This document shows positions 1,387 through 42,639 of a DNA stretch of 64,000 bases, piece after piece. The notes beneath the pieces were generated by a model, which worked only from the letters and a program-made list of their open reading frames with translations, searched no databases and was not told the DNA's origin. Each line of letters begins with the position of its first letter. Within the stretch, counting starts at the first letter, position 1. This DNA is from Rebecca billardiae RCC1528 (lineage: Eukaryota > Protista > Haptophyta): the NCBI GenBank assembly GCA_965240325.2, contig OZ251229.1:2356001-2420000 (forward strand), read 5' to 3'. Both the position numbers and the translations under genes were made by a program.

Positions 1387-3175
1387 TGGCCCGCGGTGCA
1401 GGGCGGAACGCGCAGCGTGGAGCCCGCTCCGTGGGCCCTAACCACGTTTCAAAAAGATCTTTGATCAAGAAAAAAGGGACGGGGGACGATTTTCAAGGCT
1501 GGAAGAGACCGAGTTTCGAATTTTGAGACCGCAAAGAGACATCGATTAGCGAGAAATGGACGCGCCCACGACTTCAGATAAGCAAAGCGGGAGTGACGCC
1601 CGTCCATAAACTTCACGCCCTTTAGGATCCCTAACGTAACGAACCGTTACACGCGATTTTTTCCAGCCAATGAGATTGCCGCAAGGTCAAGGAGCGACGA
1701 CGACGTATCTAGATAGCCAAGCCGGCACAGCATTACTTGTGTGCTGGGCTGCCGCTTTGGGGGTTCTGATCAATCACCCAGGGCCCGGTCTGGTCATAAA
1801 TGAGCCCGCCGTTTATGACGACCCATTCATGTACATGTATGAACAATGGGTCATTAGACCGCGTCGTATCTTAAAAAACCGCTTCATCACGTTGGACCGC
1901 GTCGTATCAATGCTCGTAAATGAAATTCTATTCTACCGCTTCACGTAGTAACCCTGATGATGATCATAGATTATGGAAGATGCTCGCGTCGAGTCGTCGC
2001 GGCGCCCCCCGTCACACGCGCAAAACAACAGAGCAGTGGGCCCGATCGCACGTGGGGGGCGATGGCAAGCAGCACCTCGACCGGCGACGCCGACCAGGAC
2101 TACGTTCGCCGCGTATTGAACGCGCTGCTCGACTCGAGGACGGTGACGCGGGTGAACAACACCACGTTCCAGAGCACCGCTGCCGCCATCTCCGTCGCCA
2201 GGCACAAGCAGACCATCCCCGGCGCCGCGAGCGAGTACGGCGTGTCAACAAAAGCGATCAAGAAGCTCCTTGGCCAGGTCCGCGAGGTGCTGGCGGCGGA
2301 GGGCGCACTCGGCAGCGGTGGCGCTGCGCGGTTGATCACCGACTTCACCACGCGCCCCGCAGGCCAGCTCCCTCCCTCCTCCTCACCCGGCCCAAAAGCT
2401 GGCAGCCGCTTCGAGGCACTCGCCGCGCTCGACGGGGAAATGCCCGCTGCAGAGCAAGCACAACCACAGCGGGGGCGCCCGGCCGGCTCGCTCAGCCTGC
2501 TGGGCACGCTCAACCTAGGCGTCACGTGCTACCTCGGCTCGCTGCTGGCTGCGCTGCTCGCGTGCCCTTGCATCGTCTCGCTCGCCACATCTGCCGCGGC
2601 GGAGCAGTGCACCAACCCCATCGTGTCCAGCATGCGCTCGCTGGCGCTCGCGCATGTCAACTGCGAGTGGCCCAGCGAGGTGGGGCCGACGCGTAGCTTG
2701 CTCGAGCCGCTCCACGACGCGATCGCGGAGGTCTGTCGGTGGACAACGGCGTTTGGGCAGCAGCAGCAGGACGCGTGCGAGGTGCTGTACAAAATCATGG
2801 AGGCCCTCGGGCTGGCTGCGACGAGGCGTGCTCGTACCTTGGCTTGCTCGAGTGCCTCGGTCAGTTGGCGAGCGAGCAGCCCTCGCAGCAGCAGCGCGTG
2901 CCGACGCCGACAATCTCGCAGCAGCAGCGCGTGCCGACGATCTCAGTCGGCCATGACTTCGACTGTACACAATCGGCGCCGCGCCGGCGGCTGCGATGGG
3001 CCCGCCCGGCCGCGCGGCGGGCGGCGGCGCGCCGCTGGAGTCTACTCGCTGCCGGGCTCGTGGCCGGGCGGGCCCACTCTCAATCGCGACGGAGGGTGCG
3101 ACGGAGGGTGCACCGCCACCGCGGGCCCCGAACTACGTTCGTTCTACGGAAAAGGACCGCGGAACGCGGTCCTAT
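1387..3175 (+). mobile_element. non-autonomous Helitron2/Helentron-like element (copy A)
   Basis: 5' T-GGCCCGCGGTG (1388-1398); subterminal inverted copy CACCGCGGGCC (3117-3127); terminal hairpin AGGACCGCG-GAA-CGCGGTCCT (3153-3173). The first ~130 bp and the 3' end are shared with 29275-30363 (-). Confidence 0.65.
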
Positions 3176-3177
3176 AG
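2062..3177 (+). pseudogene. truncated ORF: HTH-like motif plus N-terminal half of a USP (peptidase C19) domain
   Basis: AISVARHKQTIPGAASEYGVSTKAI is HTH_psq-like; GTLNLGVTCYLGSLLAALLACP is Cys-box-like; FGQQQQDACEVLYKIMEAL is QQDAxE-box-like. No His box; the sequence degenerates after ~2830. Confidence 0.6.
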
Positions 3178-3445
3178 ATATGATGTAGATATGTATACGT
3201 ACAAGTGCGTAGACTACTACTGATATATGCGATGAGTAAGAGCCTCGCACGCCACCGCGGCTCCGACGGACACATCGCGCGGCGCACGTCACGACCCGCG
3301 TCGTCGGGGTCGTCGTCGCCGTAATCGCGTCAAGGACAACTTGGGCGCCGTCCGCATCTCGACGACGCTGTGCCAGCGGCGCACTCCGAGGATGGATGCG
3401 CCGCCACGCCGCGGGCGGTGTCACTCCGCCTCCGGACGTGCGCGC

Positions 3446-5479
3446 TCACGACGCCGCGTCCATCCGGCGGCGTGCGACCTCTTCGGACGCCTCGTTGAAG
3501 TGCATGTCGAAGCGCGCCTTGTACGCCGCGCGGCCGGTCGCCGACGTGCCCCACGACTTGAACTTGTCCCACTGGCGCGCATCGTCGACCCAGTGCGAGC
3601 GCGGCCGCGCCTTCGCGCGTCGGCCGACACCGACGGGCGTGGGCGCGGGCGGCGCCCGGCTGCCCGCGTGCGAGATCCCGGCGCGCGCCGCCGAGTCGTT
3701 GACGTGCGTCGCAATGTCGGGCAGCTCGGGCATGGGCGGCGGGCGCCCCTGCCCCTTGCGCGGGCGCGAGCCGGGCGGCGGCGGCGCCGTGGCCGCCTTG
3801 CGCGCCGAGCGCACGGCCATGTCGAAGAGCGAGGCGCGCTCCACGGGGGTCGAGAAGCCGTCCTGGCAGATGTAGTAGTTGGCGCGCACGCGCGCGTTTG
3901 TCGCGCCCGGCGGCCGCACCTGCGGCACCGCGCGCGGCCGCTCGCCGATCGGCGGCGCGTTGGGCGGGCGGACGGCGTGCGCGTTCACCATCCGCTTCAC
4001 GAGCGCGCGCTTGTACCCGCGCCACTGCCGCCCGTCGATCAGGCTCGCGATGATCTCCGAGTCGGTCACGTACCTCGACGCGTTCGCGCGGAAGAGCGCC
4101 TCGATCTCGGCGTCGGCCGTGTTCCGAAAGTCGATGGTGTGGATCGAGAAGAGCTTCATGTCGGTGCACGAGACGATGGAGGCGAGCGAGCGGCCGCCGA
4201 CGTGCTCGGAGAGGATCGCGAGCTCGCCGAAGAAGTCGCGCGGGCCGAGGCGGCGCAGCTCGAGCGTGCGCCCCGGCACGGAGAGCGGGTCGGTGTCGGC
4301 GCGCGCCGCTTTCTCCAGGATCCGCTCGGCCGACTGGTCCGCCTGCGCGTCGTCGCCCGGCTCGATCACGCCCGCCGAGATGGCGATCATCCTGTCGTCG
4401 CCCTGCGCGCGCGTGAGCCGGATGGAGTGGTCCTCCGGCACGAGCACGCCCATGTGCGAGGTCGCCTCCGCGCGCATCTCCGCCTCGCGGAACGCGCTCT
4501 CCGGCACGTGCCGCAGCACGCGCGCCTCGCCCGACAGCACAAAGTAGAGCTTGGTGGGCAGCTCGCCCTGCTTGATGAGCACGCTGTCCTTGTGCACCTT
4601 CTCGAGCTGCAGCTTCTCGACGAACGGGCGGAGCGACTTGCGGTCCAGCCCGCGGAGGAGCGGGATCGAGGTGAGGAAGTCCACCTTCTGCCGGAACTGC
4701 TCGTCGAAGGACGAGGCCATCACCGCCGAGAAGGCCGTCTTGGTCACGACGATCACGCTCGCCGGCTCGAGCGCGCGCACCTAAGGCCGCGCGCGGCGCA
4801 AAGGGGGGGGCGGGGGCGGCGGCGCCGAGCGCGGTCAGGCGGGGTGCGCGGACGCCGCGGCCACGCGCGCCACCGCGCGTGCGGGCGGCCGCCTGCGCGC
4901 GCGCACCTCGAGCGGCTTGTGCGCGCGCTCGTCGCGGCGGCCGGCCGCGGCCGCAAAGCTCGCCCACGCCTGCCCCGGGTAGAGATGGCCTGCGACGCGC
5001 CGCCCGTACTGCAGCGCGAGCACGCCCTCGAGGACGATGTAGAAGTGCTCGTCCTCCTCCGGCTCCGTGTGCGTCGTCGGCAGGCGCGCCGACGCGCGCG
5101 CCGTGTACGACGCCGTCAGGCCCGTGTCTGGCAGCGCCTCGCGCGCGGCGGCGGCGATGATGATGAGCTCCGACTTGACAAATGACTCGCGCACGATGCA
5201 GCCGGCGATCGCGAAGCTCGAGATGTCGCTGAGCCGGCTGAACCACTCGAACGCGTTCAGTATGTGCAGCAGCTGGTACTGGTCCGACTCCTTGCGCGTC
5301 GTCGGGTCGGTCGACGTGAGCTTCTTGGCATCCGCGATCTCGGACGCTTGGCCCGGCCACTTGCTCACGGCGAATGTGCGCTCGGTGGCGACCGCGTCGC
5401 GCTCCACGGCGGGGAGCTCATTCACCACCGCGCGCTTGAGCTTGTGCCATTCGGACTCGGTCGTGTCGCCGATCACCAT
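3446..5479 (-). CDS. protein with two cyclic-nucleotide-binding domains (intron 4781-4906; start uncertain)
   Basis: HFYIVLEGVL..GHLYPGQAW..VRALEPASVIVV, and LIKQGELPTKLYFVLSGEARV..LGPRDFFGELAIL..RSLASIVS. A GT..AG intron joins the two ORFs in frame. Confidence 0.8.
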
Positions 5480-7511: not shown

Positions 7512-7919
7512 TACTGTACTGTAATCCTCTAGTCATATCATCTTCTGAGTCGAGCACGTTGTCAGCCTCAGGGACAGCCTGGGCGGCTCGGGACTGCGGT
7601 CTGTCTCACTGTCTGAGACTGAGTGTCTGTCACACTGCGGGTTATTAATGGAATTCCGATCGGTTCTGAGTTTACTATGAGTAAATCAGAAGAGACGCAC
7701 ACAGCTCAGGCAGGCGTGAGATTGACGCCCGCCAACTGTCACCGCCCATGTCAAAGCCGTCGCCGATGGTAGCGCCGTCGGATGATTCGTTCAGCCGTCC
7801 GCCTGCGAGGCCTGGATGAGCGGGCCGCGGCCGCCTCGCGAGTCGCGGCCGGCAGCCAGCGCCCGCCGTCTACTCAAAAATGCCGCACAATTAAACACTG
7901 TTCAACTCACGTGATGGAT

Positions 7920-8060: not shown

Positions 8061-8611
8061 GCGAGGTCGGTTGCGAGCGGCAAGATTCTGATATGTTATC
8101 AATAACCAATAAATTCGGACGAAATTTACCGGCCGACAGCTGACCCAACTACCCCTATCCGAGCCTAAACAGCTCTTGAACAGGTATAATCAAGCATGAT
8201 GAGCAAGTCGGATTCGCACGACGCCAACCTGCCGCCTGGTGTTCATTAGCGTCGTCTAATACGCGTCGTTTTTCCAAAAGGATCTAAGTAAATGCATATG
8301 AGAGTAATTAGTGTTTGATACGACGCGAGGGGCCGAGGTTATGTCGAATGCCCGTTCAGATGATATATCTGAACCTCCAGAATATGGCGAGATATCGACA
8401 TCTCCTCATAATCTCTCTGAACATCTAGAACGCGGTACTACTGATTACTATGACCAAATTCCTTGATGAAGATTAACCAAGATTCCCCGCGCAACCAAGG
8501 GTTGCCGTTCGTCAATGGCTGGTTAGGAGTCGGAGCCACGTCGAACCACGGCGCGCGGGGCTTTTTTGCCTTTTCCGAACAGGAGCACTGGTTGCGAAGG
8601 CGGGGTGCCAC

Positions 8612-11600
8612 ATGCGCGGCTTCTGCGCGCGCCAGTGGTGCTTCGGCTACATCGCGCCGTCGACGGCCGCTCGGCGCCACGTCGAGGGCGTGCGCGATGC
8701 ACGGCACGACATCTCGCTCCTCACCTCGCGCTTCCGCGCTGCGGACGTGAACGCGCGGTACGAGCGCTCGGTCGGCGTGACGAGCTGCTGCCTCTACAAG
8801 AGTCTGCACCTCGCGTTCCTCCTCGTGCCGGCTGCGCTCGTCGTCGGGCAATCGATGCAGCACGGTGTCAAGCCCGCCGTCTTGCTGTCGCACGCGGAGC
8901 GGGCGTTCGTCCTCGTCCACTTTGCGCTCTGGCTTGGGCGCGCTGCGGTCGCGGTCGCGCACCTGGCGGGTCGCGCGCCGCGCGCCGCGCTCGAGGGCGC
9001 GACGGTGCTGGAGGTGCTCGCGCGCATCATCGCGCAGGTGGGCGTGGCGATCCCGATCGCCCTCGCCTGGCACAACGACGGCCTCCTCATCACCTCGCAG
9101 CTCTCCGCCGCCGTCGCGACGCTCGAGGTCGCCGCGCTCACGCGGTACGAGCAGGCCCTCCCGGTCGCGGCGGCCGTGGTCGGGACGCAGCTGTACACGA
9201 TCGCGCGCGCGCCGGCGGGCGCGGCGGAGTACGGCCAGCCGGCCGTCATGCTCGTCGCGCTCGTCACGCTCCCCCTCTTCGTGCACATCGAGGTCGTCAA
9301 GCGCAGCGCGTGGCTGCAGGGCGAGCTGCTCACCTCTCTGAGGCAGGAGGTGTCGCACTTTGGTGCGCGGCCGCGCGCGCGCCGACACGTGGCGGCGGCG
9401 CCGCGGCGGGCGTCGTGCGCGCGCAGTGTGAGGCTGCGCCTGGCTGAGCGCGCCGCTGCCGCGCCGCCGCTGCCGCGCCGCCTCGCCCGCAGGCCTGAAC
9501 CACCTGTACCTCGCGTCGTCGGCCATCGAGCACACGCTGGAGACTGCGGACGGGGCGGCGGGTGGCGGCCGGACCGACGTGGCCGAGCCGCTCAAGGCGA
9601 TCGGTGAGATGGTCGAGGAGGTGACGAAGCTGCTGCAGATCATCGTCGACGACGAGCACCCCTCCGACCTCGTCCTCTCCGAGTTCAACCTCAACCAGTT
9701 CGCGGCGCTCGCCTTCCGCGGGAGCACGCACGAGCTCGACCCGAGCGCGGACGGGCAGAGCGCGCGCTTCGCCTCGTGGGCGGCGCGCTCCATCATCGCC
9801 GACGTGATCGCGGTGGCGCGGCGGCACGGCCGCGGCGCGGTGCGCGGCACGCTGGCGCTCAACACCGACGCGGGCGGCGGCGGCGGCGGCGGCGCGCCGT
9901 GCGAGCTCGTCATCACGGTGACGGCGGAGACGGCAGGCGTGGAGCACGTCGACCCGACGACGGCAACGCTCCTGCGGAAGGCGCGGCAGAGCTCACGGTA
10001 TGGGGGCGTCAGCCAGCCTGAGGATGGCTCGCCGCACTCGCCCTGCCGGAGCCAGCGCGTGAGCCTCGACGTGGAGGCGGGCGCGGTCGAGCTGGGCGCC
10101 TTCCCCGGCCCCTTGCACCCACCGCAGCGCGCGCGCGATTCCACGAGCGCTGCCGGCCCCGCGCCGCGCGGCAGCGCAGGCAGGCGGTTCCTCCCAGCCT
10201 TTGCCAGCAGCACGCCGCTCCGTGCGCTCGAGGGGGCGGTGCAGCTCGCGGAGCGCGCGGGCGGGCGGATCCTTTGCCTGCAGGACGACGCGTGCCTCAC
10301 CACCGTGTACACGCTGCACCTGCCCGCCGACCGCGTCAAGCTGCGCACGCCCTTCGCAGCGTCGGAGCGCCGGCCGGACGCGCGCACGCCCTCGCGCCTC
10401 TCGTCAGGCGGCATCTCCGAGCGCACCTCCGCAGCGCTCGACCCGCTCCGGCGTGGGCTGAGCACCGCGACGGGGGGCGCGCACGCGCTGTGGCAGTGGC
10501 AGCGGGGCCTCCGCTCGTCCGACGCCTCGCCCGTGCAGGCGGCGAGGCGGGGCAGCATGCTGGCCAAGGACCCGCCATCGCCCACGCGCAAGGCGCCCTC
10601 GACCGAGCCGATGCTATCCCGCTTCCGCAGCCGCGCCCTGAGCCAGGCGAGCGACGATTCGTTCAAGCTGACGGGCGGCGGGCATTGCTCGCCCATTGCG
10701 AGCACCGGCGTCTCGGTCTTCTCGAGTCTCGCCGAGCTCCCCGCCGTGGAACCCGCCATCGCCATCAACTTCCCGAGCGCTAGGCGTCGCGACGCGATCC
10801 CAGTCGAGGCCGCCTGCGCTCCGCCGGCGGGCGGCGGCGAGCCGACGAGTGCGGGCGGCGGCGAGCCGTCGAGTGGCCACCGCATCGAGGGCGAGGCTGC
10901 GCGCGCCGCACACCAGGCGCCGCCGGCGCCGTCCAGCCTGGAGCTCGATGGCGCTGCCGCAGCGCACGAGGGCGTCGGTGCGCGGAGCCCGCGCTTTCGC
11001 TTCCCCTCGCTCGGCGGGGCGGCGGTGCAGCCCGTGCTGGAAGCGGTCCGCCCGGCAGCGGGCAGCGAGCCGCACGCCGCGCCGGCGGCCGCGGGCGAGG
11101 GCGCGCAGACGCACGCGCACACGCTCCTCGACGTCGACAGCGCGTCACCCGCGTTGAGGCTGCGCGAGTGCACGCCCACCCCCGTGCTTCCCATCGCGCT
11201 GCCCGCACCCGCGCCCACGCCGCCTGCGCGGCTGCCGCTCGAGCTCGCGCCGATGCCCTCGAAGCACTGCGGCATCGAGCGGAGCCGCTTCCGCCCTCTG
11301 CGCGCGGACGAGCGAGCCGCGCGCATCCTGGTCGTGCTCGACAACAACCTCGACCCGCCGGCGTGGGACGGCTCGACCTCGGGCAAGCAGATCGCACGGC
11401 GGCTGCGCGAGATGCAGCTTCCGGGGCTGACGGTGGTGATGCACACGGGCTGCGCGCCGACCGAGCTCGCCGGGCTGCTCGCCTCGAGCGATGTCGACCA
11501 GGTGATCGCAAAGGACAAGGCGGGGCGCGAGCATGTGTGCAACCTGTGCGCGCAGCACGACCTCTGCCTCTTCGTGGACGACATGGCCACCGTGCTCTCG

Positions 11601-11798
11601 GCGATCGACCTCTCGCTCGCCAAGCTGCTGTACGGCAAGGTGCGCGCGGCCGAGCACGCCGGCGGCTGGGCAGCGACCGCGAACACGCACGTGCGGTACG
11701 CCATGTTCTCGCGGCAGGCGGAGCTCGATCTGCTCTACGCCGTGTGCGCGCGCGAGCTCGTCTTCGACGACAACCTTCTGCTGTGGCACAGCAAGTGA
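8612..11798 (+). CDS. multi-pass membrane, divergent hybrid histidine-kinase-like protein with atypical receiver domain (intron 9363-9492)
   Basis: Several hydrophobic helices. Splicing yields LRQEVSHFGLNHLYLASSAIE, a degenerate H-box. A degenerate HATPase-like region follows, then C-terminal receiver motifs VVLDNNL, SGKQIARRLRE, VVMHTG, VDQVIAK and LFVDD. Confidence 0.65.
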
Positions 11799-13588
11799 AG
11801 AAAGAACTGGAGAGCTACTGTGTCATCTCGCCTGCCTGAGCTGTGTGCGTCTCTTATTCTTAGTAAACTGTTCTCGCCTGCCTGAGCTGTGTGCGTCTCG
11901 CTCTTATTCTTAGTCAACTGTACTGCTAGCTCATGCTCGAGATGATTCATGTATCATGATACATATCTACCCCTCTTTAGGCTACGAATTTTGGATGTCT
12001 TGAGAATTCTCATCGCGTTCAAGATCGGACGTGATTGGGGCAGATACTACAAAAAATGGCGAGATATAGTCTACGACCGATGCTCGCATCATTCACAATC
12101 CTGCGACCTGCGAGGCATGAATAAGCATTCCGAACCGCAGCGGCTCTTCCTGTACACGTCTCTATTCACAGACATGCTATGACACAGCTCGCTGATACAT
12201 GTTCGTCTATACTAGTGGGGTCCAACACTAGGCCTGCGTCCCATCCACACACTAGTAGTGTTCGCCGCTGCCGAAATCCCCAAAGTCGCCCGAGCCTGCC
12301 TAGGCGGCATCCCCGTTCTGAGACGAGCTAGCTTCCGATCGAGTCCGGATGACGAGCGGTTCATTCTATGATTTAACGACACAGGTAGGACGACTGCGAC
12401 CAGCCCCTCTGGCTGCTCTCGCCCTCTCGGACGCCGGGGGGGAATAAAGACTACAAGGGCTTGATTAATACGACCAAAAGCGATGAGAATTAAGTGGGTA
12501 ACCGAAACGATTACAAGATCTGAATAATCATCCGCACATTGTCGGTCTTCCCTGAATCCGTCAACGATCGTTCCCCCTTGATTCCTTTGGTTAGACGACT
12601 CCATGCAATTGAAGAAAGAACTGGAGAGCTACTGTGTCATCTCGCCTGCCTGAGCTGTGTGCGTCTCTTATTCTTAGTAAACTGTTCTCGCCTGCCTGAG
12701 CTGTGTGCGTCTCGCTCTTATTCTTAGTCAACTGTACTGCTAGCTCATGCTCGAGATGATTCATGTATCATGATACATATCTACCCCTCTTTAGGCTACG
12801 AATTTTGGATGTCTTGAGAATTCTCATCGCGTTCAAGATCGGACGTGATTGGGGCAGATACTACAAAAAATGGCGAGATATAGTCTACGACCGATGCTCG
12901 CATCATTCACAATCCTGCGACCTGCGAGGCATGAATAAGCATTCCGAACCGCAACGGCTCTTCCTGTACACGTCTCTATTCACAGACATGCTATGACACA
13001 GCTCGCTGATACATGTTCGTCTATACTAGTGGGGTCCAACACTAGGCCTGCGTCCCATCCACACACTAGTAGTGTTCGCCGCTGCCGAAATCCCCAAAGT
13101 CGCCCGAGCCTGCCTAGGCGGCATCCCCGTTCTGAGACGAGCTAGCTTCCGATCGAGTCCGGATGACGAGCGGTTCATTCTATGATTTAACGACACAGGT
13201 AGGACGACTGCGACCAGCCCCTCTGGCTGCTCTCGCCCTCTCGGACGCCGGGGGGGAATAAAGACTACAAGGGCTTGATTAATACGACCAAAAGCGATGA
13301 GAATTAAGTGGGTAACCGAAACGATTACAAGATCTGAATAATCATCCGCACATTGTCGGTCTTCCCTGAATCCGTCAACGATCGTTCCCCCTTGATTCCT
13401 TTGGTTAGACGACTCCATGCAATTGAAGAAAGAACTGGAGAGCTACTGTGTCATCTCGCCTGCCTGAGCTGTGTGCGTCTCTTATTCTTAGTAAACTGTT
13501 CTCGCCTGCCTGAGCTGTGTGCGTCTCGCTCTTATTCTTAGTCAACTGTACTGCTAGCTCATGCTCGAGATGATTCATGTATCATGAT
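11796..13588. repeat. tandem array of an 814-bp unit (2 full copies plus ~165-bp partial)
   Basis: Units start at 11796, 12610 and 13424; copies 1 and 2 are near-identical (one difference seen: G12140 vs A12954). Confidence 0.95.
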
Positions 13589-13764
13589 ATACATATCTAA
13601 AGCTTTAGGTGATCCTTGATCTGAGATCTGGGTCATGACTATGAGGTCATCATCGTCAATTTGACTCTCAGCTACTGTGCTTAAGCGACTGTTCGTCGCC
13701 AGTGAAGATACAGTCGCCAGGAGGGTGCGCGTTGTCGCCGTGCACTCTCAACTCTGTCCAGCCG

Positions 13765-14865
13765 ATGCAGCGGAGGCTGCGCTCCGCGGCCCGACAGCTG
13801 CAGCTCGCTGCATCGCTGCTGGTGCTCAGCAGGCGGCCGCTCACGGCTGGCATGACCACGGCGGCACCGCCCGCTCTCCACCCGCCGAACCTCGACGTCA
13901 TGTTCCACGTGAACTGCATGAAGAGCCGGCGGCCGACCAAACGGCAGCTGCGCACGCGCCTGCGGTTGGTGCGCCCATCAGACGAGCACGCGACCTTGCC
14001 TCAGCTGAGCCGCGTGGGCGGCGTGGACGGGCTTCTGGGCAGGCTCTACCCTCCCGAGGCCCTCGAGGAGCCGACGCGCGACTCGGACGCGTGGAGCGAG
14101 CACAACCATCGCGCGCGCATCGAGTTTGAGAGCTACTTTGCAGACAAGGGCTACTCAGCGTCGGGGCGCGAGCTCGACGGCGAGTGCGCGGTGCGCTTGC
14201 TGCGCGATGCGATGCGGCTCAGCCCAACGGACACGCTCCTCGACCTCGGCTCGTCCACCGGCCGCGTGCCCATCCTCGCATCGTATGTGTGCGGCTGCGA
14301 GCGCGTGCTTGGCGTCGAGCTGAGCCCGAGCCGGCACGCACTCGCCGAGCGGGCGCTGCGCGAGCTCGCACGCGTCGACGAGGGCGCGGCGCGGCGCGTC
14401 GAGTTGATGCAGGCGGATCTTATGGACGCGCCCCTCGGCGAGTTTGGCGTCATCTACTGCGCCGTCCAGCCCAGCGGCGCGCAGAGGCTGATGCCAGTGC
14501 TGATGCCCGTGTTGCGCGATGCCATCATCGCCGCAGCGGCGGGAGGCGCGATCGGCGGTCACGCGCCCGTGCGCTTCTTCGCCGCGGGGTTCGACCTGCC
14601 AGCGGACGTGCCGGGCATCACGCCGCGCCTCGTTGCCGGCCACATCTTCGCGCCGCCGGGCTGGACGGACGAAGAGGGCACCGGCCCGGCCCTGCGCGGC
14701 ATCCCCCTGTACGGCCTCGTTGACGGCCCGCGCACCGTGCTCGAGTACGAGCTGCACGTGGGGGCGGACGCGGGCGGCGATGGTGGGCCCGGTGCGGACC
14801 GAGCCTCGTCGCCGCGGTCGTCTTCGTCTGCTGCGACGCAGTCCTCGGCGGGCGGCGAAGCCTAA
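13765..14865 (+). CDS. class I SAM-dependent methyltransferase, DOT1-like
   Basis: MRLSPTDTLLDLGSSTGRVPILA..VLGVELSPSRHALA..VELMQADLMD. Confidence 0.75.
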   Translation: MQRRLRSAARQLQLAASLLVLSRRPLTAGMTTAAPPALHPPNLDVMFHVNCMKSRRPTKRQLRTRLRLVRPSDEHATLPQLSRVGGVDGLLGRLYPPEALEEPTRDSDAWSEHNHRARIEFESYFADKGYSASGRELDGECAVRLLRDAMRLSPTDTLLDLGSSTGRVPILASYVCGCERVLGVELSPSRHALAERALRELARVDEGAARRVELMQADLMDAPLGEFGVIYCAVQPSGAQRLMPVLMPVLRDAIIAAAAGGAIGGHAPVRFFAAGFDLPADVPGITPRLVAGHIFAPPGWTDEEGTGPALRGIPLYGLVDGPRTVLEYELHVGADAGGDGGPGADRASSPRSSSSAATQSSAGGEA

Positions 14866-15842: not shown

Positions 15843-16421
15843 TCACTCGCCCTCGAGCTGCGCCATCGTCTCGAGGTACCGCCTGTGCGTCGTGGCCGCG
15901 ATGTGCGCGAACGGCGCCTCGACGCCCGCGTGCTCGAGCGCGGAGCACTCGAAGAAGGCAAAGTCGTGCCGCCGCGCGAACTCCTCGCCAGCCTCGCGCG
16001 AGACCTCCGCGCGCTCGTTCAGGTCTGTCTTGTTGGCGACCAGCACGCCCGCGAGGAGCGCGTCGGTCGGCACGACGCGGCCAAGGCGCTCAAGCCAGTC
16101 TGCGCAGTGCTGGAGCGACTCGGGTCGCGTGACATCGTACACCAGGATCACAGACGACGTGTTCTCCCAGTAGTGCGGCGCCATCTCGGCGAAGAGGTCC
16201 TGCCCTGCCGTGTCGAAGAGGTAGAGCTCAACCGACGCCTGCGTGTCGGGGATCGCGACCGGCTTCATCACAAAGTCGACGCCGATGGTCATCAGGTAGT
16301 TCTTCGGGAACTTCTGGCCGTTCGACTGGAACATCTGGGTGAGCGCGCTCTTCCCCACCCCCGCATCGCCCAGCACCGTCACCTTGGAGCGCAGCTTCAA
16401 GCCCGACAGAGCCGCCACCAT
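15843..16421 (-). CDS. IFT27: intraflagellar transport protein 27 (Rab-like GTPase RABL4)
   Basis: GDAGVGKS, MFQSNGQKFPKNYLMTIGVDF, VELYLFDTAGQ, NKTD, CSAL; no C-terminal prenylation cysteines. Confidence 0.88.
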   Translation of the reverse strand: MVAALSGLKLRSKVTVLGDAGVGKSALTQMFQSNGQKFPKNYLMTIGVDFVMKPVAIPDTQASVELYLFDTAGQDLFAEMAPHYWENTSSVILVYDVTRPESLQHCADWLERLGRVVPTDALLAGVLVANKTDLNERAEVSREAGEEFARRHDFAFFECSALEHAGVEAPFAHIAATTHRRYLETMAQLEGE

Positions 16422-16803
16422 ACTGCCCTGCCCCCCTTGCTGCGCGACCTCCGTCAACGGCCGCGGCCGCCGTGATATGGGGTAACTTGTATTTTGAATA
16501 AAAGCGGACGAGAAATCAAACGAGTCGGAAAACGTCGTCGCCCTCGCGGCTCGCGCGCGCGCGACGCGAGTTTTATATTTACTTTTTCGGTTTGCAGGCG
16601 GAGGTCGAGACGGCAATCTCGGCATCTCGACCGCCGACCGAGGACCGGAATCCCGAAGTTCCAGACATCTATCGACGCGGCAAAAAGCAGTCGATCGAGC
16701 CGAACTGGACGGAACCGGTGGCAGCTGCATCCCACAGTTGCACCGCTCACGGCAGACCACCCAGCCCGTCTCCAGCGCGCACTCCACAGACCCGCACCTT
16801 TCG

Positions 16804-17422
16804 ATGGGGAAGGACGACAAGAAGGTTGAGGGCGCCGCGGTCGGCATCGACCTCGGCACCACGTACTCGTGCGTCGGCATCTGGCAGAACGACCGCGTCG
16901 AGATCATCGCCAACGACCAGGGCAACCGCACGACGCCGTCGTACGTCGCGTTCACAGACTCGGAGCGGATGATCGGCGACGCGGCGAAGAACCAGGCGGC
17001 GATGAACCCGCGCAACACGGTGTTCGACGCGAAGCGCCTCATCGGCCGCCGCTTCGCCGACGCCGCCGTGCAGTCCGACATCAAGCACTGGCCGTTCAAG
17101 GTGGTGCCGAAGGAGGGCGACAAGCCGTACATCCAGGTGGAGTACAAGGGCGAGACGAAGGACTTTGCGCCGGAGGAGATCTCGTCGATGGTGCTCGTCA
17201 AGATGAAGGAGGTCGCGGAGGCGTACCTCGGCTCCGACGTGCCCAACGCGGTGATCACCGTGCCCGCCTACTTCAACGACTCGCAGCGCGCGTCGACCAA
17301 GGACGCGGGCTCGATCGCCGGCCTCAACGTGCTGCGCATCATCAACGAGCCCACCGCCGCGGCGATCGCGTACGGCCTGGACAAGAAGACGACGCAGGAG
17401 CGCAACGTGCTCATCTTCGACC

Positions 17423-17454
<32 letters not shown>

Positions 17455-18774
17455 ACGATCGAGGAGGGCATCTTCGAGGTGAAGGCGACCGCGGGCGACA
17501 CGCACCTCGGCGGCGAGGACTTTGACAACCGGCTGGTCAACCACTTCGTGCAGGAGTTCAAGCGCAAGCACAAGCAGGACATCACGGGGAACGCGCGCGC
17601 GATGCGCCGGCTGCGCACGGCGTGCGAGCGCGCGAAGCGCACGCTCTCCGCCTCGACGCAGACCTCGATCGAGATCGACTCGCTCTTCGACGGCATCGAC
17701 TTCTTCTCCTCGATCACGCGCGCGCGCTTCGAGGAGCTCTGCATGGATTTGTTCCGCGGCACGCTCGAGCCCGTCGAGAAGGTGCTGCGCGACTCGAAGG
17801 TGGACAAGCGCTCGGTGCACGACGTCGTGCTCGTCGGCGGCTCGACGCGCATCCCGAAGGTGCAGCAGCTGCTCTCGGACTACTTCAACGGCAAGGAGCC
17901 GAGCCGCTCGATCAACCCGGACGAGGCGGTCGCGTACGGCGCGGCGGTGCAGGCCGCGATCCTCGCGGGCACGGGCTCGGAGAAGACGTCGGAGCTGCTG
18001 CTGCTCGACGTGACGCCGCTTTCGCTCGGCATCGAGACGGCGGGTGAGGTCATGTCCGTGCTCATCCCGCGCAACACGACCGTGCCGACGAAGAAGTCGC
18101 AGACGTTCTCGACGTACTCGGACAACCAGCCGGCGGTCACGATCCAGGTGTTCGAGGGCGAGCGCTCGCGCACCAAGGACAACAACAAGCTCGGCGAGTT
18201 CAACCTCACGGGCATCCCGCCGATGCCGCGCGGCGTGCCGCAGATCGACGTCACCTTCGACATCGACGCGAACGGCATCCTCAACGTCTCGGCGGTCGAG
18301 AAGTCGACGGGCTCGGAGAAGAAGATCACGATCGCGAACGACAAGTCGCGGCTGTCCAAGGAGGACGTGGAGAAGATGACCGCCGAGGCGGAGAAGTACA
18401 AGCGCGAGGACGAGGAGTTCAAGGCGCGCGTCGAGTCGAAGAACGGCCTCGAGAACTACTGCTACCAGATGAAGGGCGCGGTCGAGGACGACAAGGTGAA
18501 GGACAAGATCGACCCCGTCGACAAGGAGAAGGCGGTCGGCGCGATCAAGGAGGCGCTCGACTGGCTCGAGAAGAACCAGATGGCCGAGAAGGAGGAGTTC
18601 GAGCACAAGCAGAAGGAGGTCGAGGGCGTGTGCTCGCCCATCATCCAGAAGATGTACGCCGCCGGCGGCGGCGCGGGCGGCATGCCGGGGATGGGCGGCA
18701 TGCCGGGGGGCATGCCAGGCGGCGGCGCGCCGCCCCCGGGCGGCAACGCGCCCAACATCGAGGAGGTCGACTGA
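16804..18774 (+). CDS. HSP70: cytosolic heat shock protein 70
   Basis: [41 protein letters not shown] repeats, C-terminal EEVD; intronless. Confidence 0.98.
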
Positions 18775-34812: not shown

Positions 34813-35333
34813 AAGTCACGCATATCTCGGTCCGCACGGCCACGCGCCCACCTGTTCGCCATCCTTCCGCCAGTCCGCCACCAGCCGGGGCGCCTGGCGG
34901 CGGAACAACACCCCGTGGAACGGGTGGCCGGTGAGAATCGATCATCAACGAGCATACTTGTAATAATGGCTTGTGGATAGGCATCAAGCTAACCACATAT
35001 CATCGGCCCATACAATTAGTACCTGATGTAGGCTCATCATCCCAAGGCGCTCGCCGTGAAAGTTGGGAAGTGCTTATTAGCGAGTAGTTGGTGACTTTTC
35101 AAGACTTGAATAGCAATTGACGAATGCGTCTTTGTGACGTTTCGTTGATTAGTGAACCCACTTCACGAATCTCTATCTGGGATTCCATCCCAGATGAGTG
35201 GTCATCAGCATCTCCTCAACCACAATTACAAATATCGAACCTACCAGAAGCTCTCCATCGGCGACGACCACCCAACACGGCCCCACCCGGCCGGGAGAAA
35301 GTGACGCCTCCCACGCCCCGGGCTATCCCCCCC

Positions 35334-37902
35334 ATGTCGTGGCACTCGATGCGATCTTGGCGCGACAGGCGTCGCACGGTGTCGCCGACGCCGGTGTCGT
35401 CACCGGTGCGCTCGACGATGGCCGCGACGCTTCGCGCAATGGAGGAGGGTGCGCGCGCCTCCGGCGACGGCGCGCGCGACGGCTCGAACGACGATGCTCC
35501 GCGCCCGACGGATGTGCCGATCATCCTCGAGCTGCCAGAGTGCGACCTGGCCGGGGACTGGAAGGACGCGGTGCTCGAGCGCGCGTATCAGGACGAGCAC
35601 ATGCTCCCCCTCCTGTACAAGCACCTCACGCGCGGCGGCATGGTCTTGCTCTGCGTCTCGTCGGTCTTCACCGTCGTGAGCTTCTTGTCGTTTGGCCTCA
35701 GCTTCGCGTTGACACTCGCGGCGAGCACATGGCTGCTGGCCTTGGTTTTGGTCTTGGTCGGCACGTTTGGCAGCCGAGCGGGGCTTCCACTCGCGGCGAC
35801 GGAGGCGGTCACGATGCTGCTCCTGGGTCTTCTGCTGGCGATCCCGCTCACGCCAACGCGTCTGTCGTCGCTGATGCAGAGCGTGCATGCTGGCGTGCGC
35901 GTGCGGCTGGACAACGAGGGCGACCTGCAGCTCGTGACGATCCGCTTCGCCGTCATCCTGCTGTACAGCGCCATCTTCGTGCAGCTGCGCCCACGGCGGT
36001 TCGCCGTCGTCCTCGTCTTCACCTGCATCTCCTCGGTTGCGCAGGAGCTCATCCTCGCGCCCGGGCTGCTGGCGACCAACGCGCGAGATTCAGTGGCCAT
36101 CATCGCGCTGCACTTGCTCGCCTACTTCGCGCGGAAGCACGTGTGGGCGATCGATCGCGCGCAGTGGCACTTCCACCGGCGCGTGGGCGACGCCGTGCGC
36201 GAGCAGTACGCCAAGGAGCGCGAGGACATCCACAACCGCCTCGAGCTCGCCAAGGTCACCGCGGGCAAGGAGGCGCGCTCGAAGCTGATCCGTGTCGCGA
36301 TGCACGACCTGCGCAGCCCGCTGCTCTCGGTGCACTCGCTCTCCAAGACGCTGGAGGCGCTGCCCGAGGACACGCCGCTGCACCACATCACGGGCTTTGT
36401 GCGCGCGCTCGGCGCGCTCTCGCAGCTGATGGAGGGGATCGTGAGCGACATGCTCGACTTTGAGCGCATCGACAGCGGGCGCATCACCCTCGTCAAGCGC
36501 CCGCTCTTCCTCGCGGATGTCCTCGGCGGTGTGCGCGCCACGTTCGAGACGGTCGCCGCCGGCAAGGGGATCGACTTCCGCATCGAGCCCCTGCCCGCCG
36601 TGCTCGCGGCGCCGCACGCGTACGAAGGCGACGCGGGGCGGCTGGCGCAGGTGCTGAACAACGGGTGCAGCAACGCGGTCAAGTTCACCGAGGCGGGCGG
36701 CTCGGTGAGAATCAGCGCGTGGCTCGCGCCCGAGCCGCCCGCGGGCAAGGGCAAGGGCTGGGACACGGTGCACGTGCGCGTTTCGGACACGGGCACCGGG
36801 CTGTCGGCGGCCGAGCTCAAGAAGCTGCAGGACGGCGACCTCTTTGTGCAGGTCGGCCGGGGCCAGCTGCAGGGCAACGGCGGCACGGGCCTCGGCCTCT
36901 CGATCGCGATGGAGCTGCTCAAGCTGCACGACGACTCGGAGCTGCGGCTGCGCTCGGCCGGCCCGGGCCAGGGCACAGACTTTGAGCTCGTGCTCAACCT
37001 CAAGCGCGCGCTGCCGCCTGCGGGCAGCGCGAGCGACCCCGCCTCCTTCGCTGGTGCTGGCGCGCTCTGCGCGCCGGCGGCGGACCGGCCCTTTGGCGCG
37101 CTCTGCGCGCCGGCGGCGGACCGGCCCTTGGCCTCGCGCTCGACGTCGCCCGCGCCCTTCCGCCACGCGGTGAGCGACATGGAGCAGATCACGGGCACTG
37201 CGACGACGATGCCGCCGCCAGGGAACGGCGGCACGCTGTCTGCGCCGTTGACCCCGGTGGCGCACTACCAGGTGGCGTCGCCGCCGCCGCCGATGCCGGC
37301 CACGGCGCCGTCGCAGCGCCGGCGGCTCAGCAGGCCGCCGCCGAGCGCGCCTGCGCCGAGCGTGCCGCCGGGCAAGCTCCGCTTCCCGCCGGGCTTCCGC
37401 TGCCTGCACGTCGAGGACGACAAGTTCGTGCAGATGACGCTGCCGCTCGCCACCTTCGAGCTCTTGGGCGCGGCGTACGACACGGCGAACGACGGCGAGC
37501 AGGCGCTGCGCATGGTCGAGGAGACGCAGTACGACTTCATCCTCATCGACAACCAGGTGAGTCCCCCGTGCCCACGCGCCGCACGCCACGCCGCGCTGCG
37601 CGCACGTCGCGCGCGCCGTCCACTCACGCCGCACCCTTCCGCGTCGCCTCCCTGTCTTCGTGCAGATGCCCAACCTCGGCGGCACGGAGACCACGCGCCT
37701 CCTACGCGAGCGCGGCTTTGTGAACACAATCATCGGGCTGACGGGCGATCCGGAGGGCTCGGACGACCGGGATGCTTTCGAGCGCGCGGGGCTGGACGCT
37801 TGCGTGGACAAGAACAGCAAGGGCACCGACTTCATTGTGAGCGAGCTGCGCAAGCTCGCCCATGGGGACAACCGGGTTTTCGAAATGCGCGCGCCAGCCT
37901 GA
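35334..37902 (+). CDS. membrane hybrid sensor histidine kinase/response regulator (intron 37557-37665)
   Basis: TM helices; H-box AMHDLRSPL; N-box QVLNNGCSNAVKFT; G1 DTGTG; G2 GTGLGL; receiver LHVEDD..DFILIDNQ|MP..GLTG..VDK. Confidence 0.92.
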
Positions 37903-38625
37903 GCGGCTGGTTGTAAGCGTCAACGACTGCGCGCCGCGATGCCTACGATGTATGACGATGCTGACTAGTCAGTCGCGCTACGCGCTAGTAACTCACTGAG
38001 GGAGTCACTAACAGCAGCAGTGCGTATTTATAATAAGATGACGCGACGACGCTCGATCTATGATGATATGCTGACGAATGGCGCGGACAGGCGGTGTCGA
38101 TCATCGTCATCAGTCGTACCGGGTGCCAAATCGGATTGACGCTGACGACGGAGTGATGACACGACTGCTTATTGACATCAGCCGAACTCAGTCAGTCGTG
38201 ACAGTCGTACTCGATCGGATATCATCGCAGGGTAGTAGTTCGTCGTATGATGATGATGATGATGATGATTCGTCGCGGACGCCGGACGGCCTCGTCACTC
38301 GTCGTCTCGAGTCCCGACTCCGACTCCGTCGATCGACCTGCAGTGAGTGCAGTGCTCGAGCCCTCGCCTCTCCGACGGAGCTGCTCGACCGCTTGATAGT
38401 TGATAGTCGTTGTTGTCGCTCGTCACTCCGGAGTCCGGACTCACTCGTCAGTCTTAAATTGCTAGTCGTCAACGCGGTCATCATCATCATCAATGACAGG
38501 CGGCATGTCGTCAGCAGTGTTGTCGACTGAGTAGTGACGAGTCTCAGACGACTGCGTCAATCACTGCGCTGACAGTGCTCACGCCTCGGCCTCGTGGCTC
38601 GTCGCGTGCCGCCGCCTCATCATCG

Positions 38626-42607: not shown

Positions 42608-42639
42608 TCATTCTATGATTTAACGACACAGGTAGGACG
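42608..42639. repeat. 32-bp dispersed element (identical at 12361-12392 and 13175-13206)
   Basis: TCATTCTATGATTTAACGACACAGGTAGGACG. Confidence 0.85.

Follow-up and report, generated by a model that had tools for sequence, protein, structure and literature searches.

A candidate circularly permuted receiver domain at the C terminus of a histidine kinase-like membrane protein in the haptophyte Rebecca billardiae

Introduction

Few signalling modules are as abundant as receiver domains, which to our knowledge are always described in one fixed order of segments. The question whether this order can be rearranged in nature is raised by a gene in a 64-kb window (the window being the whole stretch of DNA analyzed here) of contig OZ251229.1 from the haptophyte Rebecca billardiae RCC1528, whose DNA is very GC-rich with short GT-AG introns. 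The gene, on the + strand between 8612 and 11798, encodes a protein that appears to be built like a hybrid histidine kinase, with membrane segments, a DHp-like part containing a His, a decayed ATPase and, beyond a long stretch of disordered linker, an output domain at the C terminus in which receiver-like motifs stand in an unusual order. An earlier note made from the sequence alone had proposed that this domain is either a circular permutant beginning at beta3 or two half-receivers. Of the two, the permutant is the better supported by our analysis and the half-receivers were not borne out: the domain is probably derived from a receiver, in beta3-first order, with a conserved strand-helix unit added at its C terminus, a reading drawn from weak profile scores, two sequences and low-confidence models. 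We found no natural permuted receiver in the searchable literature. Nobrega and colleagues are said to have described, in PNAS in 2014, circular permutants of CheY that were engineered for folding studies. Their paper is in the reference list of PMC5341065.

Results

Motif order and conservation in the C-terminal domain

The last ~160 residues of the protein carry, in this order, a phospho-Asp-like strand, a Thr, a Lys and then an acidic pair, all in frame 0 of the + strand. The strand ILVVLD (11325-11342) ends in an Asp at 11340-11342 (domain residue D13), VVMHTG holds a Thr at 11445-11447 (T48), VIAKD holds a Lys at 11511-11513 (K70) at a distance of 22 residues from the Thr, as in CheY, and LFVDD holds the Asp-Asp pair at 11577-11582 (D92-D93). 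Each motif that the earlier note quoted was found where it had placed it.

The sole relative that we found is a protein of 1084 aa (P0001), encoded at 1966-5220 of a 6.6-kb genomic contig with 72% GC (L001; run SRR30872636). The two proteins are 54-56% identical over the last ~160 residues and 35-39% identical over the membrane and DHp/CA parts, with no similarity in the linker; because identity is highest there, the C-terminal domain is the most constrained part of the protein. The D, T, K and Asp-Asp are all invariant between the two. The best-conserved block, as judged from invariant alignment columns, is the GGWAATANT stretch together with the C-terminal extension (11694-11795). The P0001 gene has no intron at the H-box and no neighbouring genes in common with the window, so synteny between the two loci is lacking.

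An exhaustive HMMER search of 1.84 billion protein representatives returned only P0001 and an ankyrin-repeat protein with 37 repeats (P0002; E 7e-8), which we rejected as a spurious relative because its score was summed over many repeats (TVLH...KDKTGR against TVVMHTG...KDKAGR). The domain stretch TVVMHTG..ELAGLL..AKDKAGR does resemble the ankyrin-repeat consensus; the Pfam Ank models do not match the domain. Word searches yielded nothing beyond P0001 for the domain and nothing for the conventional receiver encoded elsewhere in the window, and two metagenome scans gave no relatives. As a positive control, the two exon halves of that conventional receiver (37395-37556 and 37666-37899) matched Pfam Response_reg at E-values of 8.6e-5 and 0.011, confirming that the receiver which the earlier note had used for comparison, at ~37400-37860, is real.

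We also looked for a beta1 strand upstream of the domain. Upstream of ILVVLD, similarity to P0001 extends over no more than 26 residues and gives way there to an Ala/Pro/Ser-rich linker of ~320 residues, and hence no upstream segment can supply beta1. A beta1 from another frame or exon was ruled out by the continuous frame of high third-position GC content (GC3) and by the lack of upstream conservation.

Profile comparisons with receivers

We compared an alignment of the domain from the window protein and P0001 (A2) with a home-made alignment of 11 E. coli K-12 receivers (A3). In the official hhalign result, domain residues 9-73 aligned to CheY 51-108 (Prob 32%, P 4.8e-4), setting D13, T48 and K70 on the columns of CheY D57, T87 and K109. 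With alternative alignments enabled (-alt 3), the first alignment paired residues 9-73 with CheY 53-112 (score 26.1, P 9e-4), the second paired residues 88-130 with CheY 8-53, which spans beta1-alpha1-beta2-alpha2 (score 20.1, P 0.011), and the third was a colinear register of residues 5-85 with CheY 5-76 (score 14.7, P 0.11). Aligned alone, the second half again paired residues 88-130 with CheY 8-53 (score 20.3, P 0.004), and D92-D93 fell on the CheY D12-D13 columns with hhalign as well as with HMMER. The best alignments do not follow the colinear order from beta1 to beta5; the match to beta3-beta5 comes first and that to beta1-alpha2 second. Column-shuffled queries gave a top score of 12.2 ± 2.6 (maximum 20.8), and the highest score among 154 windows (164 residues each) cut from E. 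coli proteins other than receivers and HADs was 24.1. Adding the two best alignments together gave no more than 35.2 in these windows, as opposed to 46.2 observed for the domain.

Filterless HMMER with the native receiver model also recovered the two halves in the window protein as well as in P0001, each time permuted and in one and the same register; the first half scored 7.7 bits over model positions 50-110, and the total was reached by none of 500 shuffles. We then rearranged the columns of the receiver alignment such that the resulting hidden Markov model begins at beta3. This rotated model gave a single alignment that runs across the alpha5-beta1 junction (model positions 5-109 of 120), with 15.7 bits for the window protein (independent E-value 6.8e-4 among 1,158 sequences) and 9.3 bits for P0001, while the maximum among 1,154 shuffled or real control sequences was 6.0-6.2 bits. 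Among 13 cut points scanned, only those at CheY 40-60 formed a plateau in both proteins, peaking across 40-54 with the highest scores at 46-50, the alpha2/beta3 boundary; most other rotations (for P0001, all of them) stayed in the null range. The similarity of the domain to the receiver profile is specific and above background in the rotated order. The shuffled order of motifs noticed earlier therefore stands above chance, as judged by the beta3-first model against its controls and by the retention of every motif in the 54%-identical P0001.

These comparisons bear on an alternative without phospho-Asp chemistry, in which the motifs arose by convergence or chance and the domain is either a Rossmann-like alpha/beta fold specific to the lineage or a degenerate pseudo-receiver in colinear order, its beta1 being ILVVLD. 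A colinear register does exist (P 0.06-0.11), and BLASTP of the domain against the exons of the window's own receiver was not significant and chose yet another register. We nevertheless consider this alternative unlikely, since each of two independent segments matches a different, complementary half of the receiver profile at a level reached by no control, the catalytic residues are invariant and lie on the correct columns, and the optimal cut point is the same in both proteins.

Comparison with HAD proteins and predicted structure

The linear order D-T-K-DD is also that of HAD motifs I-IV in their normal sequence, which the earlier note did not mention. A shared Mg2+/phosphate site in HAD proteins and CheY is mentioned in PMC10400377, where it is credited to Ridder and Dijkstra 1999. 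The main rival reading takes the domain for a member of the HAD superfamily, either a phosphatase or a pseudophosphatase, that is divergent, has no cap and is fused to a kinase-like protein; its receiver likeness would reflect this active-site similarity. When we ran hhalign against eight E. coli HAD segments that extend from motif II to the end of the core (A4), domain residues 30-71 matched at P 0.0019 (3.4e-4 for the first half alone), with a score of 26.6 that exceeds the maximum of the real-protein null (22.9). LFVDD aligned to HAD motif IV in the correct order, a match that was not significant (P 0.16), in contrast to the P of 0.004 for receiver beta1-alpha2 over the same half.

Further results speak against a HAD origin, which appears distinctly improbable to us. 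Motif I reads DNNLD in both proteins instead of DxDx(T/V), and the HAD core model aligned a different 'DG' in its stead. With HMMER, the HAD model gave 10-11 bits on the window protein and only 0.3-0.9 on P0001. The rotated receiver model covers both halves (15.7 and 9.3 bits), whereas the HAD profile covers only the Thr-Lys stretch. Conversely, when true HADs were run against the rotated model, none exceeded 5.4 bits apart from an artificially spliced KdpB core at 9.3, and none of their alignments crossed the junction. No HAD family matched at E ≤ 10 in Pfam or NCBIfam. Searches with single sequences by phmmer lacked the sensitivity to be of use for either E. coli receivers or HADs (p 0.01-0.6).

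Two AlphaFold runs on the two-sequence alignment gave a pLDDT of 54 and 53 and a pTM of 0.58 and 0.52. Both models place strands at 7-14, 42-48, 66-69 and 87-91, helices at 25-38, 52-61, 72-84 and 94-110, an unmodelled stretch, and a further helix at 138-156. At this low confidence, four beta-alpha units are clear and Rossmann-like, and the strand order is not readable. The Foldseek list was headed by the CopA P-domain (23-27% identity) and by cap-less HAD phosphatases at E 5e-3 or weaker, with the PhoB receiver at rank 32; VIA-align returned generic Rossmann folds only (Z ≤ 7.2); and an Atlas shape search gave HAD, Cd-ATPase and GT-A folds at TM 0.42-0.52. The presence of the CopA P-domain, KDN9P/KdsC phosphatases and Cd-ATPase among the top Foldseek and Atlas shapes is in favor of the HAD interpretation. 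Rossmann- and HAD-like matches would equally be expected of a beta3-first permutant, and such predicted shapes do not separate the hypotheses. In language-model feature space, the clusters nearest to both proteins were Response_reg (0.76; 0.90 with 22/30 hits) and not HADs, which we take as leads only.

Gene model and the kinase-like part

The earlier note had treated 8612-11798 as one protein-coding unit. It is indeed a coding region, though not a single open reading frame (ORF): the predicted gene consists of two exons on the + strand, at 8612-9362 and 9493-11798, whose underlying ORFs (8612-9607 and 9579-11798) lie in different frames. They are separated by a 130-nt GT-AG intron at 9363-9492 (donor G|GTGCGC, acceptor CGCAG|GC), and joining the exons restores the Gly codon of VSHF-G-LNHLY. 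A GC3 of 0.87-1.0 tracks exactly both exon frames from ~8600 to the stop codon at 11796, which marks a real coding region of ~1018 codons. Database searches were run on the exons separately. An antisense ORF of 1088 codons that spans the whole gene (8438-11704, - strand) was rejected as a shadow of GC-rich coding DNA because the GC3 periodicity follows the + strand frames. The features of the gene and of the repeat array that follows it are:

8612-9362, + strand: exon 1, with the N-terminal membrane domain (~5 hydrophobic segments) and the start of the H-box, VSHF (ORF, GC3 and hydropathy; 35% identity to P0001 residues 32-266)
9363-9492, + strand: GT-AG intron of 130 nt that splits the Gly codon of VSHF-G-LNH (frame change, GT donor, CAG acceptor; ISHFGLNHLY is uninterrupted in P0001)
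9493-10340, + strand: what remains of the DHp-like helix pair, together with an ATPase (CA)-like region that is degenerate when aligned with seven histidine kinases
10341-11300, + strand: unconserved linker of ~320 residues with a high content of Ala, Pro, Ser, Arg and Gly (composition; no similarity to P0001; high GC3 in frame)
11322-11540, + strand: first half of the C-terminal domain, candidate receiver beta3-alpha3-beta4-alpha4-beta5(-alpha5) (hhalign, HMMER)
11565-11693, + strand: second half of the C-terminal domain, candidate receiver beta1-alpha1-beta2-alpha2 (hhalign, HMMER, rotated model)
11694-11795, + strand: C-terminal extension outside the receiver model, with the strand-like stretch HVRYAMF and a helix (invariant columns; residues 118-164 matched by no profile; both models have the helix at 138-156)
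11796-11798, + strand: predicted stop codon TGA, within the first array unit (sequence)
11791-13599, no strand assigned: array of an 814-bp unit repeated in tandem, with two full copies and a further 181 bp, directly abutting the gene

The phospho-acceptor His is present in the H-box (codon 9356-9358; VSHFGLNH across the intron, ISHFGLNH in P0001). In a MAFFT alignment with seven histidine kinases, the Asn of the N-box is replaced by Val (Leu in P0001) and DxGxG by ETAG (ETRG in P0001), and a Gly-rich G2 was not found in the window protein; this is one alignment at ~15% identity, and its column assignments are approximate. No HisKA or HATPase_c match was obtained for the window protein in Pfam, and HATPase_c reached E 0.1 in P0001 only. 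A pseudokinase, as the earlier note had suspected, fits this alignment, and a pseudokinase with a retained phosphotransfer His is a reasonable inference from these residues.

The tandem array at the end of the gene

The full copies of the 814-bp array are 99.8% identical, and each unit has an internal 46-bp duplication; the array has ~52% GC within a region of roughly 70% GC, and no Rfam or Pfam match was found for it. Short fragments of the unit are also present at 7690-7719 and 42608-42639. Since the array starts at 11791, the stop codon lies within its first unit, in agreement with the initial observation that the array begins where the gene stops. Judging from the sequence, the array would supply the stop codon and at most replace a short unconserved tail.

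This arrangement could suggest a broken remnant, composed of the C-terminal half of one receiver and the N-terminal half of a second, with the rest lost to insertion of the array; the stop codon does sit in the first unit, and the trailing ELVFDDNL resembles a beta3, which the earlier note had suggested could be a second beta3 cut off by the array. P0001 is at odds with this: it reads ELALENNA at the position of ELVFDDNL, and has the same domain limits without any array, ending after ~22 non-conserved residues in AT-richer intergenic DNA. Furthermore, the domain is the best-conserved part of the protein, and the DNA downstream of the array holds a separate gene for a DOT1-like methyltransferase and no receiver sequence, so that a receiver remainder beyond the array was rejected. 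The remnant is thus already largely refuted, and we give it hardly any credence.

Neighbouring genes

The DOT1-like class I methyltransferase gene lies at 13702-14865 (+ strand; Pfam DOT1, E 2.4e-6), and its product has an N-terminal stretch that by eye resembles a targeting peptide. Also recognized by eye were a Rab-like small GTPase at 15843-17258 (- strand; GDAGVGKS, DTAGQ, NKTD) and a cytosolic HSP70 at 16738-18774 (+ strand), the exact sequence of which was not found in a collection of 15 billion proteins. A conventional hybrid histidine kinase with HisKA, HATPase_c and Response_reg domains is encoded at 35124-37916 (+ strand). Its receiver is split by a 109-nt phase-0 intron (37557-37665) right after the phospho-Asp strand (..LIDNQ / MPNLGG..).

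Discussion

Several observations weigh against a permuted receiver. The most conserved block, GGWAATANTHVR, together with the last helix, has no receiver counterpart; the Lys is followed by Asp and not by the usual Pro; and scans of the ORF, the domain, both domain halves and P0001 with Pfam and NCBIfam returned no relevant family at E ≤ 10. A sequence-profile search of the PDB gave no usable match (a hit to DDX23 at E 0.45 was rejected). The absolute scores on the rotated model are low, the reference profiles are small and were built for this test with the hypothesis chosen beforehand, and the AlphaFold models are poor because only two sequences exist. In addition, the HAD profile matches alpha-beta(Thr)-alpha-beta(Lys) about equally well, so part of the signal would be generic to phospho-Asp Rossmannoid folds. 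The absence of a family match, the generic Rossmann folds returned by VIA-align and the conserved block without a receiver counterpart would also suit the Rossmann-like alternative described above.

Assuming that the domain is a permuted receiver, its segments would run beta3(Asp)-alpha3-beta4(Thr)-alpha4-beta5(Lys)-alpha5, then beta1(Asp-Asp)-alpha1-beta2-alpha2, and then the extra strand-helix unit. Such an order could have arisen from two tandem receivers if one of them lost its first half and the other its last part; what is left of the second beta3-alpha3 may then survive as the extra C-terminal unit. In the HAD core the sheet order is 3-2-1-4-5, as compared to 2-1-3-4-5 in the CheY-like fold. 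In the permuted domain the five active-site residues would still meet at the C-terminal ends of the strands, and the sheet order would be equivalent to 3-2-1-4-5, that is, HAD-like. The Asp at 11340 would be the residue that accepts the phosphoryl group. As the protein's own ATPase looks dead, the donor of this group would be the DHp His, itself charged in trans, or else the protein may have a role in phosphotransfer or as a phosphatase, possibly as a module in the manner of Spo0B, ChpT or RcsD. Taken together, we tentatively propose a functional, natural permuted receiver that arose from duplicated and truncated tandem receivers, is phosphorylated on the Asp of its first strand, sits on a kinase-dead membrane protein that retains its His, and represents a living intermediate between the CheY and HAD folds; this full proposal goes well beyond the derivation of the domain from a receiver, and we hold it as a possibility rather than as the expected outcome.

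If true, the phospho-Asp switch would tolerate rewiring of the chain. The likeness of the CheY and HAD active sites would gain an evolutionary footing, with CheY-like (2-1-3-4-5) and HAD-like (3-2-1-4-5) folds being interconvertible, and there would be an explanation for the failure of domain libraries to detect output domains of this kind in algal two-component proteins. The conformational switch of receivers runs from the phospho-Asp to the alpha4-beta5-alpha5 face; moving this face to the middle of the chain and providing new termini would therefore change how the signal is passed on, which can be tested on a small soluble domain.

Among known systems, the CheY-like receiver (PF00072) carries its acidic pair, phospho-Asp, Thr and Lys on alternating beta-alpha units, as the algal domain appears to do, and the profile similarity between the two spans CheY 8-112. 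The algal domain differs in that it puts beta3-beta5 before beta1-beta2, carries an extra conserved strand-helix at its end, has no Pro after the Lys and lies below every curated detection threshold. In hybrid histidine kinases, including the conventional one of the same window, the receiver is likewise C-terminal, following a DHp/CA-like module. HAD phosphatases and the P-domain of P-type ATPases have their nucleophile Asp, Thr, Lys and acidic pair in the same succession along the chain, share the expected sheet order (3-2-1-4-5), and gave the best, though weak, structural matches; unlike them, the algal domain lacks the second Asp and the Thr/Val of motif I and has no cap and no recognizable squiggle or flap. 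Spo0B, ChpT and RcsD are kinase-like phosphotransfer or pseudokinase proteins, and the algal protein resembles them in having what looks like a DHp with a kept His beside an ATPase-like domain without ATP-binding residues. In contrast to them it is eukaryotic, appears to be anchored in the membrane, and is joined by a linker of ~320 residues to a domain that is receiver-like and probably permuted. Finally, the engineered permutants of CheY reportedly indicate that the CheY fold tolerates new termini; those are laboratory constructs, whereas the algal domain is a natural one.

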